From Guillardia theta nucleomorph (taxonomy: Eukaryota; Protista; Cryptophyta), in the NCBI GenBank assembly GCA_000002975.1, contig AF083031.2, forward strand, positions 30,001 through 62,000: a DNA stretch of 32,000 bases, read 5' to 3'. A program made the translations under genes and the position numbers. Shown in pieces: positions 17,225 to 30,881 of this stretch; position 1 is the stretch's first letter, and the number at the start of each line of letters is the position of its first letter. The notes under the pieces are model-generated. The model was not told the DNA's origin, ran no database searches, and saw only the letters and a program-made list of their open reading frames with translations.

Positions 17225-17788
17225 TTAAATCGTAATCAATGTTTTAGAATCAATTAAATTTTTGTAGAGTCTAAATGAACCAAAAAAAATTATTTTATGT
17301 TTTAAATATATGAATTTTCTCAAAGATTTGAAAAATACAAAAAAAAAAAAAATATTTTTTAGTCCAGCATTTTTTAATTCCGATAAATAATCATTTATTT
17401 TTTTACTATTGAAATCATGTAAAAAAATTCTAGAAAAATTTGAATATAATTTTTTTAAAGAATACATGAATTGTATTTCACAAAGATTTTTATTAAATTT
17501 ATAATATTTGGCATTTAAAAAATCTATACATTCGTTTTCAATTTTCCATAATCTCATCCTCGTATGTGATTTTATTAGGTATTTGATCCTATCAATCTCA
17601 ATTTCTTTTATTATTTTATTTAACGTTGAAAAGTAGTTTATTATTTTATAATGATGTAAGAAATTTTCTTGATAATTTATCATTTCGATCAAAAAATTTA
17701 AATCATTATTTTTTTGATTTAAAAGTATCATAACACCTTTTTCATTGAAAATAAAAAGTAGCTTCTTGATAAACACTGAATAGTACAT
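17225..17788 (-). CDS. sld5: GINS complex subunit Sld5 (divergent)
   Basis: NEK...LL and EIEIDRIKYLIKSHTRMRLWKIE match the Sld5 consensus MEMERIRYVLSSYLRCRLMKIE. Confidence 0.8.
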   Translation of the reverse strand: MYYSVFIKKLLFIFNEKGVMILLNQKNNDLNFLIEMINYQENFLHHYKIINYFSTLNKIIKEIEIDRIKYLIKSHTRMRLWKIENECIDFLNAKYYKFNKNLCEIQFMYSLKKLYSNFSRIFLHDFNSKKINDYLSELKNAGLKNIFFFFVFFKSLRKFIYLKHKIIFFGSFRLYKNLIDSKTLITI

Positions 17789-20700
17789 TAATTATTAAAA
17801 TTTAGTCTAGCAATTATATTCATCGATTGTAATTCTTGTAATAGCAGTTTACAAGCATAAGGTATCTTTACTGCAACCACATTAGTGTTAGAATTTGAAG
17901 TATGAATAATTCCAGAGTTTTTATCAAATTTGGCTTCATAGCAATCGGAATTAAGAAGTAATCTGTCTAAAGCTAACTCAGATGCACCGAAACTTATTAA
18001 ACAATCTCTTTCCATCTCACCAAACCTTAACCCGCCTCCTTTACTGCGCCCCTCAACTGGTTGATATGTTAGCTTAGATTTTATTCCAGTTGCTCTCGAA
18101 TGAATCTTATCCTTAACCATATGTTTGAGTCTTTGATAAAAAACAATTCCTGAATAAATTTGATTATTTATCAAATTTCCTGTAATTCCATTATACATAA
18201 AATCCTCTCCATTGGATACAAATCCAAAACTTCGCAAAGATTTAACAATTGTATTTATGTTTATTTTTTTAAAAATTGAACCGTCTTTAAATTTACCAGA
18301 AATACAACCAGATTTTGATAAAATAATTTCAATCGTTTTACCAATCGTCATTCTACTTGGGAAACCATGAGGATTCATTATTATATCAGGACAAATTCCT
18401 TTTTCTGAAAAAGGCATATCCTGTTGTGGTTTAATAAAACCACAGATTCCTTTTTGTCCATGTCTAGATGAAAATTTATCGCCAATTTCAGGATTTCTAC
18501 ACTCTCTTATCAAAAATTTTGCTAATGTTAAATCTAAACCATATTTAACAACAACCAAGTTGTCAGAATATTTCAGATTACTAGTAATTTTTTGATTATT
18601 GTTATTACTTTTGTTTAAGAATTCAAATACTTCTTTGTTATTGTGATTTACTTTACTGAAAAGCTGAGTTAAATGTCTAAAACTACTTATTTCAATTTTG
18701 GTTTTTCTTAAAAAGGCAGTTTTGAAAAAGCCCCTTTCTACACTTGACTTATTTAAAATAATTGCATCTTCTACATCATAACCAGTAAAAGACATTATAG
18801 AAATACATGTATTGATACCAGTTGGACATTTACCGGCTCCTATTAAATTTAATATCTTTGTTTTTAGTATGGGTTTTTGAGGATAAATTAACAGAGATAA
18901 TGTGATATCAATTCTTGAATTCTGATTAAATCCCAAAAAACTCGCAGATTGTTTCCCCATCGAACATTGATATGTGTTACGAGGAGATTGATTATGATCC
19001 GAAAATGGAATTAAAGATGCTGATATTCCTAAAATATTACCTTCGGAAATCTCTAAATGAGAACTTCTAAAATTAATAGCTTTTAATGAGTCTGCAATTA
19101 TTGTGTTGTTTTCTTCATTACTATCAATATATTCAATGAAACCAAACTTCGTTAAAATATTCCAATTAATAATTTTTTTACTATACAATTTAAGATGTTT
19201 TTTTTTTGATTTCAGAATTCCATTTTCAATTATGTATAAGGGCCTACAGAGTCTACCTTTATCTGATAAAATCCAAATTAGTTTCATAGTAGAATCCCAG
19301 TATATCGAAACTGAACTTTCTATCAAATTAGATCTTCTCATATTTCTAAAGCAAAAGAGAAATTTTGACGGAAATTGATGAAATCCGATCAATTTTTGAT
19401 TTAAAAATATTTTAGTCATATTCAGATAATTTTTTATTGTTTTTATCGAACTCAATTTCGAGTCAACACCAAGAATATTGCAGACTTTAGCTAGAAAATA
19501 GTCATTTTCCTGGATAGAAATATGAGAAAGTAGTGCCAAATTTTTAATTAATCCACAAGATTCTCCTTCGGGGGTATCAGAAGTACATATAAACCTCCAC
19601 TGTGTTGGATGAAGATTTCTCGGAGAAATTGATTTTCTTGTTTTTTCAAAATTACTTGATGTTTTTAATAGCATACTAAAACTTGACATAAAAGATAATC
19701 TAGATAAAATTTGTGTTATTCCGTTTTTATCAATCCCATATTTATTTATCTTCCAATTCCCAGTAATAAAAGCATTCTCTATACCATAACTGATAAAATC
19801 AGATTTTATAAAATGATGATAAATAGTTTCATTAACTTCAATTTTTTTTTTTTCTATGAATTTTTTAGACTCAATCCATGATTTGTGCAATAAATCTTCT
19901 AACAAAATTTCTACTAAATCACCTGAAAGTTCTAACCTTTTATTACCGTAATAATCTTTTGAATCCAATAAATCAGGAATCTGTAAAGCGTATAAAAGTT
20001 TTCTAATCATCATTGTCATGAATATCCCTTTTTCTAAATTTTGACTAACTGGATTTTTGTTAACAATAATATGAGAAAGTATATGATCTAAAATTTGATA
20101 ATTCGATTCATTATAAAAAAATGTTATTTTATTAGTTTCTATGAATCTTATATCCAATTTTTGCATCAGATAACATACTGATTGAAATTGATTTACAAAT
20201 CCTATTTTTAAAGATTCGGTTAAGCTATAAAATAATGTTGATTCAAATTCATATCCTATAAGATCGATAATATCCAAATTATTTTCAAATCCAAAAGCTT
20301 TTAGAATTATGAATATTGGTATGTCTTCGATGAAAATTTTGTTTCTGAAATAAATTTTATTTTCTTTGATGATTATAAAACTTTTAGTGTTTCTTTTTTT
20401 ATACGATGAAATTACATATGAATAAAAGTTTCCACTTTTGTCTTTTTCTATTCCTATCCTATTAAGTACAAGTTTTTCTTGTATTAATATGACCTTCTCA
20501 GTACCTTTAATTATAAAATATCCACCAGGGTCTAATGGACATTCATTAATTTTTATATAAAAATCTTCTTTTTTTCCATATAAAATACATCTATTACATT
20601 TTAACATAAGAGGGATTTTAAATATTAAATTATTGTTGATAAATTTTTTCTTGTTATTTATTCTGATAAATAAATCGGAATAGATATCAATACTGTATGT

Positions 20701-20937
20701 GGTATCTTTAATCCTAGAATGAAAAGGGGTGACTGTATTGCCAATATTTTTTTCAAAAAAAGTTCCAATACTCATACTTGTGTTTATAAATTTAATTTCT
20801 AGAAATGAATTGTAGTTCCATATTTCGTTTTCGATTTTCTTAAGGATCGATATTAGTTGGTAATTTATAAGTTTGTTATAAGATTCAATCTGTTGCCAAA
20901 TTAAACCTCTAGATATTAAATACAATCTTAAATTCAT
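17788..20937 (-). CDS. rpc2: RNA polymerase III second-largest subunit
   Basis: DPGGYFIIKGTEKVILIQE, DYYGNKRLELSG, FEKTRK, DTPEGESCGL, GDKFSSRHGQKG and IPYACKLLLQEL. Confidence 0.96.
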   Translation of the reverse strand: MNLRLYLISRGLIWQQIESYNKLINYQLISILKKIENEIWNYNSFLEIKFINTSMSIGTFFEKNIGNTVTPFHSRIKDTTYSIDIYSDLFIRINNKKKFINNNLIFKIPLMLKCNRCILYGKKEDFYIKINECPLDPGGYFIIKGTEKVILIQEKLVLNRIGIEKDKSGNFYSYVISSYKKRNTKSFIIIKENKIYFRNKIFIEDIPIFIILKAFGFENNLDIIDLIGYEFESTLFYSLTESLKIGFVNQFQSVCYLMQKLDIRFIETNKITFFYNESNYQILDHILSHIIVNKNPVSQNLEKGIFMTMMIRKLLYALQIPDLLDSKDYYGNKRLELSGDLVEILLEDLLHKSWIESKKFIEKKKIEVNETIYHHFIKSDFISYGIENAFITGNWKINKYGIDKNGITQILSRLSFMSSFSMLLKTSSNFEKTRKSISPRNLHPTQWRFICTSDTPEGESCGLIKNLALLSHISIQENDYFLAKVCNILGVDSKLSSIKTIKNYLNMTKIFLNQKLIGFHQFPSKFLFCFRNMRRSNLIESSVSIYWDSTMKLIWILSDKGRLCRPLYIIENGILKSKKKHLKLYSKKIINWNILTKFGFIEYIDSNEENNTIIADSLKAINFRSSHLEISEGNILGISASLIPFSDHNQSPRNTYQCSMGKQSASFLGFNQNSRIDITLSLLIYPQKPILKTKILNLIGAGKCPTGINTCISIMSFTGYDVEDAIILNKSSVERGFFKTAFLRKTKIEISSFRHLTQLFSKVNHNNKEVFEFLNKSNNNNQKITSNLKYSDNLVVVKYGLDLTLAKFLIRECRNPEIGDKFSSRHGQKGICGFIKPQQDMPFSEKGICPDIIMNPHGFPSRMTIGKTIEIILSKSGCISGKFKDGSIFKKININTIVKSLRSFGFVSNGEDFMYNGITGNLINNQIYSGIVFYQRLKHMVKDKIHSRATGIKSKLTYQPVEGRSKGGGLRFGEMERDCLISFGASELALDRLLLNSDCYEAKFDKNSGIIHTSNSNTNVVAVKIPYACKLLLQELQSMNIIARLNFNN

Positions 20938-20942
20938 ACAAA

Positions 20943-21041
20943 GCGGTATTAGCTCAGCTGGAAGTATTTCAACAGCGCAGGTCTCATATTGTACGCGATC
21001 CTGAGGTCATGAGTTCGAGTATTATTTTCTCATATACCGCA
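20943..21041 (+). tRNA. trnM(CAU): Elongator tRNA-Met(CAT) with three introns (20965-20973, 20989-20997, ~21020-21027)
   Basis: Acceptor GCGGTAT/ATACCGC plus A73; D-stem GCTC/G|AGC; anticodon arm CAGGT-CTCATA|A-TCCTG with U31:U39; T-arm ATGAG-TTCGAG|T-CTCAT. Removing 9+9+8 nt gives a 73-nt cloverleaf. Confidence 0.92.
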
Positions 21042-21042
21042 A

Positions 21043-21555
21043 TCAGAGTTTTCCAAGGTATTTATCATCAATGCAACCAATTGCCTGAATTGATCCGGTG
21101 TTATATTTTAAATTAAGAATTTTACATCTTATTATATCGTTTTTTTTAATATTGATTGTAGAATTTTTAAAATTAAACAAAGTTTGGGATTGTTGTGAAA
21201 TTAAATCTTGGGAAATAAATTTATTTGATATAAAGATGTTTAATATTCCAGCAGATGCAAATATACCAAAAGATGTAATGTTCTTTACAATAGCATCAAT
21301 TATTTCACCTTTGAAAATTTTTAATACAACTGCCTGGAAATTCACTTTAAACAAAACGCTAGAAAAACCTGGTAGAATTTTACCATATAATTTCTGATTA
21401 TCAATGTTAATTATCATAATAATAGATCCTACATTACCAAATGGCAATCCTTCAGTTAATGTTATTAGCTGTGCAATAAGTGTAGATTTTAGTTGATTAT
21501 TTAACAATTTTGCAGGAATAAATAAGTTTTGATTCAATGTCATAATTGCATACAT
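21043..21555 (-). CDS. rpb7: RNA polymerase II subunit RPB7
   Basis: VNFQAVVLKIFKGEIIDAIV, GIFASAG and AIGCIDDKYLG. Starting at ATG 21555 gives 170 aa; the longer ORF just reads through the tRNA-Ala antisense. Confidence 0.92.
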   Translation of the reverse strand: MYAIMTLNQNLFIPAKLLNNQLKSTLIAQLITLTEGLPFGNVGSIIMIINIDNQKLYGKILPGFSSVLFKVNFQAVVLKIFKGEIIDAIVKNITSFGIFASAGILNIFISNKFISQDLISQQSQTLFNFKNSTINIKKNDIIRCKILNLKYNTGSIQAIGCIDDKYLGKL

Positions 21556-21630
21556 GGGGAAATGACGCAGTGGTAGCGTGTTTGTTTTGCAAGCAAAAGG
21601 TCGTGGGTTCAAAAACTCCCACTTTCTCCA
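21556..21630 (+). tRNA. trnA(UGC): tRNA-Ala(TGC) with a 3-nt T-loop insertion/intron (~21614-21616)
   Basis: Acceptor GGGGAAA/TTTCTCC with G3:U70 and A73; D-arm ACGC/GCGT; anticodon arm TTTGT-TTTGCAA-GCAAA; T-stem GTGGG/CCCAC with a 10-nt loop TTCAAAAACT. Confidence 0.93.
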
Positions 21631-21633
21631 CAT

Positions 21634-28619: not shown

Positions 28620-30881
28620 TTAAATTATTTTTGAAAAGTATAAGAATTTATAATTAACTTTCATTTTCAATAACAATTTTTCATTTAATATTCTAATTTG
28701 ATTCAAAATACCTCTTACCTCTGGGTAGAAATAGTATCTAAGGTCTTTTCTTAGATTGATTAAGAGAAAATCGGCTTGAATTGATATTGTTCCTTTTAGT
28801 ATTCTATTCAGCATAGAATCGCAAGAGTATATATGATCATCATCTAAACTATATTTCACCATTAGATTTTTGGTTTTAAATTTTTCGTTCAGAAAGGTCG
28901 TCAATTTGTAGATTTTTAAATTTTTATTTAACATATAAAGATTATTTTTTTCTTTATGTAAATTAAAAAATTTCTTGATCAATAAACTACTAAAAAAATT
29001 TAATTTAGAGAAAATAATTATATCAATTTTTCTGAAAAAATTTCTTAATTCTTTTTCTGATAAAAAAAAATTTTTGTTAAATAGTGATGTAAATAAAAAA
29101 TTATTAAATTTCATAATTATATAGAAATTTAATTTTTTTGAACAAAATTCTCCGGCAAACTGAAATAATATCTCGCTATTTATTATTTCCCAATTAATTT
29201 TGAAAACCTTGAAATCTATGCAAATTTTAGACATTTCACAAATTTTAATGTATCTTAGGAAATTATAAGTTAATAAATAAGAAAATTTTTTTACTTCAAA
29301 TTTATCTTGATAAAATATTAGATTATTTTTTCTTATTTTTTCATACACAATAAAATCCTGAACATAATTTATATGAAATAAATTTTGATTAAAATAACTA
29401 TAAAAAAATTTTTTATTATCAAAATACTCTATTGAAAATATATATTTATTTTTATAATGAAATAGTATTCTACTAATTGAAAAACCGAAAAATTTCAAAA
29501 TTCTGATTTTAAGTGTGGATAAATTTACCGGTATGTTACTATTTTCTTCGTTATGAATTTTTGGAAAAGTTGATCTGTATATTTTAATCTCAGAATTTTT
29601 AGATTTTTCATTTTCATTGTTATTATAAAAGAGTACTAAGAAAACGATAAAAAAAATTGTTGATAATAACTTAAAAGGTAAAACACTTTTAAAAGAACCT
29701 TGTTTTACTATGAAAGATAAAAATAATTTAATAGAGTTTAAAAATTCATTTTTTATAATTAAAAATTTGATGATATTAATTTTCATAATTCTTAAAATCA
29801 AAAGGTATATCTGTTCTTTTAATAATGAATGGTTTAAAAATATTAGTAATCGGATGTTTTTTTGTATTGTTTCGGTTTGTTGAAAAAATAAAAAATTATT
29901 TGAAAATAATGAGATAGGTAAATTTGTTAAGATTTTGGAAATCCATAATAAAGTATGAAAAAAAATAAATCTTGATTCTATTGTAAAAAATTTTAATTTC
30001 AAATCTTTAAGTTTTTGTGTGATAAGTGATAATTTTATAATTTTAAATCTAATTTGTTTAAAATTTTTAATTTTAAACATGAATCTACATAATGTATATT
30101 TTATGTTTTTTTTAATAAATTGAAAATAAAGATTTATAAAAATTTTGTCATTAATAAATTTATTAAAACTGGATTTAATTGATAAAATTTTTGAAAAATA
30201 ATTATAATGTTGACTATCATTTAGTTGATTAAAAATGATTGCTATATTATAATTAGAAATTTCAAAAATTTTTGAATTCAACGCAGTACAAGTAGAGTAA
30301 AACATATTTATTAAAGTTGAATTAACTTTATTGCTTTTTTTAGAAAGATTATTAAAAAAAAATTGATTTGTAAACATTTTGGAAAAAAAATAAAATTTAT
30401 AAAAGTCAAATAAATATTCTAGGTTTAATAATAAATCACTATTTTTATCGTGACATAAAATTAATTTTTTTTTAAATTTATGGAAATTTTTTTTTTTTTT
30501 TTCAAAAAATTTTAATTCAACATTGAATCTATATAATTTAGATCTAAATAAATCAATATTAGTTTGAAATGATAATAAAATTAAATTTGCAAAATACTTT
30601 GTTTTTAGCAAGTGATTATTTATTTTTATGAACAATTGTAAAATTGTTTTTTCATAACTATTTTGATTGGAGTATAAATCTCTTAAAATTCCAATAAAAA
30701 TAAAACTTTTAATATATTCAAAAATAATGCAAATATTAATAAATAACATAGTTTTTCTATATCCATTGAAGTAATCAAAAAGACTTAAAAATTCTTGTGA
30801 CCAAATTAGTGTTGAATTTGATAAATCATAAATATTTAACCAGAGTGTAACTAACAAAAACTCAACTGTATGATTATTCAT
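28620..30881 (-). CDS. Hypothetical protein, ~753 aa; possibly very divergent eIF3c/Nip1 (PCI domain)
   Basis: Long ORF with its first ATG at 30881 (the track starts at a TTG). The C-terminal half has eIF3c-like blocks in the expected order. Confidence 0.65.
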   Translation of the reverse strand: MNNHTVEFLLVTLWLNIYDLSNSTLIWSQEFLSLFDYFNGYRKTMLFINICIIFEYIKSFIFIGILRDLYSNQNSYEKTILQLFIKINNHLLKTKYFANLILLSFQTNIDLFRSKLYRFNVELKFFEKKKKNFHKFKKKLILCHDKNSDLLLNLEYLFDFYKFYFFSKMFTNQFFFNNLSKKSNKVNSTLINMFYSTCTALNSKIFEISNYNIAIIFNQLNDSQHYNYFSKILSIKSSFNKFINDKIFINLYFQFIKKNIKYTLCRFMFKIKNFKQIRFKIIKLSLITQKLKDLKLKFFTIESRFIFFHTLLWISKILTNLPISLFSNNFLFFQQTETIQKNIRLLIFLNHSLLKEQIYLLILRIMKINIIKFLIIKNEFLNSIKLFLSFIVKQGSFKSVLPFKLLSTIFFIVFLVLFYNNNENEKSKNSEIKIYRSTFPKIHNEENSNIPVNLSTLKIRILKFFGFSISRILFHYKNKYIFSIEYFDNKKFFYSYFNQNLFHINYVQDFIVYEKIRKNNLIFYQDKFEVKKFSYLLTYNFLRYIKICEMSKICIDFKVFKINWEIINSEILFQFAGEFCSKKLNFYIIMKFNNFLFTSLFNKNFFLSEKELRNFFRKIDIIIFSKLNFFSSLLIKKFFNLHKEKNNLYMLNKNLKIYKLTTFLNEKFKTKNLMVKYSLDDDHIYSCDSMLNRILKGTISIQADFLLINLRKDLRYYFYPEVRGILNQIRILNEKLLLKMKVNYKFLYFSKII

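Follow-up and report, generated by a model that had tools for sequence, protein, structure and literature searches.

The nucleomorph of the cryptophyte Guillardia theta is of red-algal origin. Its genome, reported as 551 kbp (PMC3017389), amounts to 551,264 bp in 3 contigs in the assembly used here, and the window that we analyzed is the 32,000-nt stretch from position 30001 to 62000 of contig 3 (C3; 174,133 bp), which is very AT-rich (G+C content of about 22%). On the forward strand, at 20943-21041, the window contains an elongator tRNA-Met gene that is split by inserts of 9, 9, and 8 nt. The gene lies between rpc2, which has its start codon 5 nt away from the 5' end of the tRNA, and an Rpb7/Rpc25-like open reading frame (ORF) that is flanked by two tRNA genes and has its stop codon 1 nt beyond the tRNA-Met 3' end. 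The features of the locus are as follows.

17788-20937 (-): rpc2, RNA polymerase III second-largest subunit, divergent from tRNA-Met
20943-20964 (+): tRNA-Met exon 1, positions 1-22 (5' strands of acceptor and D stems, U8 A9, D loop, G22); near-invariant in 16 orthologues
20957-20976 (+): predicted relaxed bulge-helix-loop (hBH) around intron 1, with its geometry taken from the sequence and pair counts from orthologues
20965-20973 (+): intron 1, 9 nt, TATTTCAAC, in the D stem between G22 and A23
20974-20988 (+): exon 2, positions 23-37 (D stem 3' strand, G26, anticodon stem 5' strand, CAU loop)
20989-20997 (+): intron 2, 9 nt, TTGTACGCG, at the canonical 37/38 site; G20995 pairs with C32
20998-21019 (+): exon 3, positions 38-59 (anticodon stem 3' strand, AGGTC, T stem 5' strand, TTCGAG)
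21020-21027 (+): intron 3, 8 nt, TATTATTT, in the T loop at 59/60
21028-21041 (+): exon 4, positions 60-73 (U60, T and acceptor 3' strands, discriminator A)
21043-21633 (-): 196-aa Rpb7/Rpc25-like ORF with S1 and SHS2_Rpb7-N domains
21050-21053 (+): candidate Pol III terminator, a TTTT run 9 nt downstream of the discriminator
21556-21630 (+): tRNA-Ala(UGC)

When the three inserts are removed, ARAGORN calls a 73-nt tRNA-Met(cat) in which all stems are paired except for U31.U39 (the joined sequence was built in a script from the window coordinates and served only as input for ARAGORN and ViennaRNA). The 7-bp acceptor stem, GCGGTAT/ATACCGC, is followed by U8 and A9; the D stem, GCTC/GAGC, is broken in its 3' strand, after G22, by intron 1; the anticodon loop reads CTCATA, then intron 2, then A38; and the T loop reads TTCGAG, then intron 3, then U60. 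The spliced model has the features of a eukaryotic cytosolic-type elongator (stems of 7, 4, 5, and 5 bp, a CAU anticodon, and U33), together with the conserved bases U8, A14, G18 G19, T54 T55 C56, and A58, which are invariant in the alignment of orthologues described below. The marks of an initiator, namely, A1:U72 and three G:C pairs at the foot of the anticodon stem, are absent, and we classify the gene as an elongator because the terminal pair is G1:C72, position 54 is T, and the anticodon stem, CAGGU/UCCUG with U31.U39, lacks the GGG/CCC run. An elongator tRNA-Met interrupted by three short introns, at 22/23, 37/38, and about 59/60, is what the initial annotation had proposed from the sequence alone, and both the ARAGORN call on the spliced sequence and the 16 orthologous genes described below agree with this proposal.

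In its unspliced form, the gene is invisible to the standard tools. ARAGORN finds 0 tRNAs across the window, and none at the locus when introns are allowed or the threshold is lowered, and the Rfam tRNA model yields no match to the unspliced region even at E<=10, as is to be expected given the presence of three inserts. Our statements on the tRNAs of the entire genome cover chromosome 3 together with 3-kb loci around 30 of the 34 Rfam tRNA hits, the other four being weaker. Within this scope, the sole other CAU tRNA, at C3:105407-105479 (+), appears initiator-like because it has A1:U72 and GGG/CCC, and 20943-21041 is the only predicted elongator tRNA-Met gene detected. The initiator-like tRNA carries C33 and T54, as opposed to the A54/A60 that are usual in eukaryotic initiators.

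The boundaries of the introns are constrained to different degrees. For intron 1, 20965-20973 is the sole boundary model that restores GCTC/GAGC. The boundary of intron 2 may alternatively be slid by one base to 38/39, which would yield A37-U38 rather than A37-A38. A one-base slide of intron 3 (21021-21028) leaves the product identical; we favor 59/60 because, among the orthologues, TTCGAG and a pyrimidine before C61 are kept, and the base after G59 varies.

To place the gene in an evolutionary context, we examined contigs encoding RPC2 homologues (44-47% identity), including two with source names, Cryptomonas curvata and Hemiselmis tepida, and scanned one metagenome with an unspliced tRNA-Met pattern in which gaps replaced the first two introns. 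The resulting alignment, A1, consists of 16 distinct complete tRNA-Met genes, that of G. theta and those of 15 relatives. In every orthologue whose flank is covered, the tRNA-Met gene is located just upstream of rpc2, in divergent orientation. All 16 genes have inserts at the same three sites, with lengths of 9-11 nt at 22/23 in the D arm, 8-12 nt at 37/38 in the anticodon loop, and 7-12 nt in the T loop; the exons are near-invariant, and the introns diverge in both sequence and length. The cells of the cloverleaf stems are 95.2% paired, compared to 27-52% in slid controls, and compensatory two-sided changes occur at 2:71, 6:67, and 27:43, so that, judged from the alignment, both the conservation of the exons and the predicted pairing of the stems are far beyond chance. 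The three predicted intron sites are of ancient origin and do not shift among cryptophyte nucleomorphs. The U31.U39 non-pair at the foot of the anticodon stem is also invariant, in 16/16 genes (columns 42 and 62 of A1).

Given that standard tRNA finders reject the locus and that import of tRNAs into the periplastidial compartment is conceivable, one could suppose that it is a decaying tRNA pseudogene and that the elongator methionine tRNA is imported from the host. Such decay is hard to reconcile with a cloverleaf that becomes perfect once the three inserts are removed, with compensatory changes in the stems across 16 lineages, in which RPC2 shares only about 45% identity with its G. theta counterpart, and with the finding of no other elongator Met gene among the 30 of 34 Rfam hits that were read. 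Compensation in the stems and invariant exons combined with freely changing inserts form the pattern expected of removed sequence and therefore argue against a pseudogene, an explanation that we find scarcely credible.

In one RNA run (reads <=60 nt, 3'-biased), the sense depth is 4-6 over 20942-21005, and no joints or deletions above the threshold are present at the locus; three contig-type RNA runs contributed no matching sequence. The lack of spliced reads in this short-read run, at this depth, is compatible with the possibility that the D-arm and T-loop inserts are retained in the mature tRNA-Met and only the 37/38 intron is spliced. Against such retention, however, the exons are invariant, yet the adjoining inserts differ in sequence and in length (9-11 and 7-12 nt), as is typical of removed sequence, and a 9-nt insert in the D stem would break the G22-C13 stacking. 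Moreover, according to a 2014 review (PMC4090602), which cites Kawach et al. 2005 (Mol Biol Evol 22:1694), the excision of the tRNA inserts of this genome was confirmed by sequenced RT-PCR products. We consider retention very improbable. Taken together, we are highly confident that 20943-21041 is a functional, single-copy elongator tRNA-Met(CAU) gene, the 99-nt-plus precursor of which would yield the 73-nt cloverleaf through the removal of three protein-spliced introns.

The three-intron gene itself is already known, having been published in 2005. The same review, again citing Kawach et al. 2005, counts nine tRNA genes in the G. theta nucleomorph that are interrupted at non-canonical sites by inserts of 3-24 nt and attributes three introns each to elongator tRNA-Met and to tRNA-Cys(GCA) (PMC4090602). 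Because this account reports the same gene, the detection of the three-intron tRNA-Met is a correct rediscovery, and the mention, in the initial annotation, of reports from cryptophyte nucleomorphs was accurate, the gene at hand being itself the published case. Judging from what that source relays, the genome and the gene are the same, and the D-arm, T-arm, and anticodon-loop inserts fall within the 3-24 nt range; what goes beyond the relayed account is the recurrence of all three intron sites in a further 15 cryptophyte-like contigs, together with the comparative case for a D-loop/intron helix. The conservation of the three predicted intron sites and of this putative helix across relatives is the addition made here, and it is a small one. 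In later papers on nucleomorph genomes (including PMC3017389), tRNAs were annotated by means of tRNAscan-SE only, and, for this reason, the tRNA-Met gene is probably unannotated in other nucleomorph genomes; elongator tRNA-Met is thus probably absent from the annotations that relied on tRNAscan-SE alone.

The initial annotation assigned to the D-arm intron an archaeal-type bulge-helix motif, with an outer GC/GC helix, a central 4-bp helix, and two 3-nt bulges, AG|U and AC|A, that contain the cuts. The outer pairs (G15-C25 and C16-G24) are indeed available, as is the helix that U17 G18 G19 A20 can form with intron bases 20968-20971 (U17-A, G18-C, G19.U, and A20-U, corresponding to intron positions -3 to -6), followed by the 3' bulge A20972 C20973 | A20974. 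The supposed 5' bulge, AG|U, is instead a part of a hairpin loop: the 5' cut falls two bases after the helix, within the 5-nt loop AGUAU (20963-20967), and because these five bases are all that remain after the 4-bp helix, the inner helix of a strict bulge-helix-bulge (BHB) motif is impossible. We accordingly rejected a strict archaeal BHB (hBHBh') at intron 1, for which 9 nt is too short and for which there is no second outer helix. The archaeal-type label thus survives with respect to the in-register geometry, with all 4/4 pairs in G. theta, but the predicted motif is a relaxed hBH, without a second outer helix and with a marginal energy; its register, as judged from the sequence comparison that follows, is real.

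In the G. theta precursor, the hBH has an energy of -0.8 kcal/mol, compared to -4.8 kcal/mol for a competing GCUG/CAGC helix, with a pair probability of 0.06; it is not part of the minimum free energy (MFE) structure, the z-score of which is -0.99, and a 4/4 D-arm match is found in 5-8% of shuffled G. theta introns. The outer helix, G15-C25/Y16-G24, is built of bases that are conserved for other reasons and competes with the D stem. In most orthologues, the hBH is favored only when the D stem (10-12/23-25) serves as the outer helix, with a lower energy, an arrangement that would place the 3' cut at the edge of the helix, not in a 3-nt bulge.

When the partners of the D-loop bases are counted from the 3' cut in all 16 genes, the mean is 3.0 of 4 pairs, compared to 1.84 after shuffling (0/5000 as high), although the shuffle tests overstate the significance because the orthologues are related; slid registers score 1.4-2.1 of 4. 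At least 3 of the 4 pairs are present in 12 of the 16 genes, and the orthologues in L047 (2/4) and L067 (1/4) fit poorly. Pair 18:i-4 is present in 16/16 genes, 19:i-5 in 15/16, 17:i-3 in 10/16, and 20:i-6 in 7/16, the last as C-G, U-A, and A-U, that is, three Watson-Crick types. Unprompted, RNAalifold predicts the pairs of positions 18 and 19. Considered in G. theta alone, then, the putative D-arm helix is weak, and it is the comparison of the orthologues that lends it support.

The only other unambiguous 22/23 intron that we found on chromosome 3 and around 30 of the 34 Rfam hits is the 10-nt intron of tRNA-Asn(GTT) (C3:120393-120476, +), which also has 4/4 pairs in register (GGUU/AACC). Because the D loop of this tRNA is one base longer, it is the spacing from the cuts, and not the position in the tRNA, that stays constant. 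Two further genes, tRNA-Cys(GCA) (C3:23172-23260, -) and tRNA-Val(UAC) (C1:177574-177654, -), have 8-9 extra D-loop bases, and under the natural parse, with the D loop AGTGGTTA, there is a 4/4 in-register helix. We discarded these genes as additional tests of the helix because each admits 14 boundary models, several of which reach 4/4, so that the match is uninformative.

The other two introns of tRNA-Met differ in the pairing that they can offer. At 37/38, the initial annotation had noted a canonical A-I pair of C32 with an intron G, and this pair, formed by G20995 in G. theta, is borne out in 16/16 genes, with the G at intron position -3 throughout. The helix at this intron has a mean of 3.06 of 4 pairs over the 16 genes, about the same as the D-arm helix; two of the four possible pairs are left in G. 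theta, and relatives have three or four. A corresponding helix at the T-loop intron is unsupported, with 2.1 of 4 pairs as against 1.6 in shuffled and up to 1.9 in slid controls. The layout of the T arm nevertheless matches that of the anticodon arm at 37/38: in each, a stem of 5 bp leads into six loop bases, and the intron is followed by a single base before the stem resumes. The neighboring tRNA-Ala(UGC) gene (Rfam score of 64 bits; missed by ARAGORN) has a 3-nt T-loop insert at the same 59/60 site, TTCAAA|AAC|T, and its orthologue in L047 (3287-3360, -) contains about 12 extra bases at this place.

With regard to the enzyme, the nucleomorph Sen proteins to which the initial annotation referred are indeed represented, by two ORFs on chromosome 2 that contain the catalytic domain of the tRNA-intron endonuclease (PF01974), one of them Sen34-like.

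C2:33693-33917 (L071 1045-1782, + in L071): endonuclease-domain ORF 1, with the best alignment to human Sen34
C2:74008-74280 (L072 1423-1938, - in L072): endonuclease-domain ORF 2, matching an archaeal EndA-like chain

In the alignment with human Sen34, the Sen34-like ORF retains the three catalytic-site residues, Tyr, His, and Lys. When the genome was searched with the Pfam models of Sen15 and the Sen54 N-domain, nothing was detected, which is a weak negative given that the controls barely registered. Nucleomorph-encoded endonucleases are mentioned by Zauner et al. 2019 (PMC6559170).

These observations suggest the following mechanism. The tRNA-Met gene would be transcribed, presumably by Pol III, as a 99-nt-plus precursor, from which the 9-nt intron at 22/23, the 9-nt intron at 37/38, and the 8-nt intron at 59/60 would be removed to produce the standard 73-nt cloverleaf, the likely cutter being a tRNA-splicing endonuclease with the two catalytic-type subunits encoded on nucleomorph chromosome 2. 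The 37/38 intron would be presented in the ordinary eukaryotic manner, with the pair between C32 and intron position -3 and the 3' cut in a 3-nt bulge. The D-arm intron would adopt the same local geometry through pairing of bases 17-20 with intron positions -3 to -6, by virtue of which both cuts would lie two bases from the 4-bp helix. The T-loop intron could be regarded as the T-arm equivalent of the 37/38 intron, without a supporting helix, and its recognition is left unexplained by this scheme.

Combining the mechanism with the comparative data, we propose, tentatively and as something a little short of probable, that the D-arm introns of cryptophyte nucleomorph elongator tRNA-Met and tRNA-Asn are presented to a nucleomorph-encoded Sen2/Sen34-type endonuclease by a conserved bulge-helix-loop, and that the three-intron architecture of tRNA-Met predates the cryptophyte radiation and was missed by tRNAscan-SE annotations of other nucleomorph genomes. 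Should this joint reading be true, G18/G19 and the 3' end of the intron would guide archaeal-like, structure-guided cutting at ectopic sites. This would run against the published view of Soma et al., who stated that most introns of the G. theta nucleomorph are unable to form a BHB.

Alternatively, the gene and its introns could be real but the D-arm helix might not be a recognition element, the endonuclease, or another activity, locating the D and T introns by measuring from the folded tRNA body or with the help of an unknown cofactor; the pairing of G18/G19 with the intron would then prevent misfolding of the precursor, serve in some other way, or be inherited sequence. It speaks for such body-based measurement that neither the T-loop intron of tRNA-Met nor its 3-nt counterpart in tRNA-Ala can form a helix, although both must be removed, that the G. 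theta hBH is marginal in energy (-0.8 kcal/mol), and that the published opinion of Soma et al. denies a BHB to most of these introns; furthermore, given the common ancestry of the orthologues, the conserved YC(C/U)-A tail of the intron could reflect descent. Yet, the pairing bases stay at a fixed distance from the 3' cut while the intron otherwise diverges, and slid registers score lower; the changes among A-U, C-G, and U-A at 20:i-6 are compensatory; and in tRNA-Asn the helix shifts by one D-loop base and the distances to both cuts remain the same. On balance, we consider it rather unlikely that the helix plays no part in recognition.

A close parallel to the arrangement in G. theta is tRNA-Ile(UAU) of the red alga Cyanidioschyzon merolae, which contains introns in the D stem, at 37/38, and in the T loop (Soma et al. 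2013, PMC3728597) and where BHB-type processing is carried out by a eukaryotic-type endonuclease with an unusual subunit make-up (PMC3728597). The C. merolae introns, however, are longer and form strict hBHBh' motifs, whereas those of G. theta, at 8-9 nt, are too short for an inner helix; in place of strict motifs, the G. theta tRNA-Met introns would include one relaxed hBH, one with a minimal A-I pair, and one without a helix. There is also a likeness to the archaeal BHB and its relaxed forms, hBH and HBh', as described by Marck and Grosjean 2003 (cited in PMC4090602): a 4-bp helix with the cuts two bases from its ends, a 3-nt bulge at the 3' site, and non-canonical intron positions that include 22/23 and 59/60. 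Unlike the archaeal BHB, the putative G. theta motif has no second bulge closed by an inner helix and is of very low stability, and the enzyme would be of the eukaryotic Sen2/Sen34 type as opposed to archaeal EndA. Intron 2, in turn, fits the canonical eukaryotic 37/38 intron in its position, its pair between C32 and intron position -3, and its 3' cut in a 3-nt bulge. The gene counts among the textbook curiosities of nucleomorphs, and our comparison extends this knowledge modestly; the combination of fixed sites with a fixed-distance D-arm helix offers a testable handle on how a eukaryotic-type endonuclease would cut non-canonical sites.

The initial annotation further held that introns in or next to the A and B boxes imply an altered Pol III promoter. 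As stated, this claim is not supported, because the A-box stretch, positions 8-19, TAGCTCAGCTGG, is unbroken and the B-box core, GTTCGA, is intact; introns 1 and 2 merely widen the spacing between the A and B boxes, like ordinary introns, and the 3' edge of the B box alone is displaced. At the 3' side, T runs trail most of the tRNA-Met orthologues, as does the candidate terminator at 21050-21053 in G. theta. A stretch of four T's is able to terminate Pol III transcription in many eukaryotes. A TTTT run is also located inside the transcribed gene, at 21025-21028, spanning the end of intron 3; therefore, unless the nucleomorph polymerase requires a longer stretch of T's, a fraction of the transcripts would terminate prematurely.

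In the same RNA run as above, the antisense depth is 30-69 over 20942-21197, and these reads appear to represent the 3' end of the Rpb7/Rpc25-like mRNA, which crosses the tRNA-Met gene to about 20942, with a tail to about 20850. At the other end of the 196-aa ORF, if its first ATG is taken as the start, the initial codons overlap the tRNA-Ala(UGC) gene (21556-21630, +).
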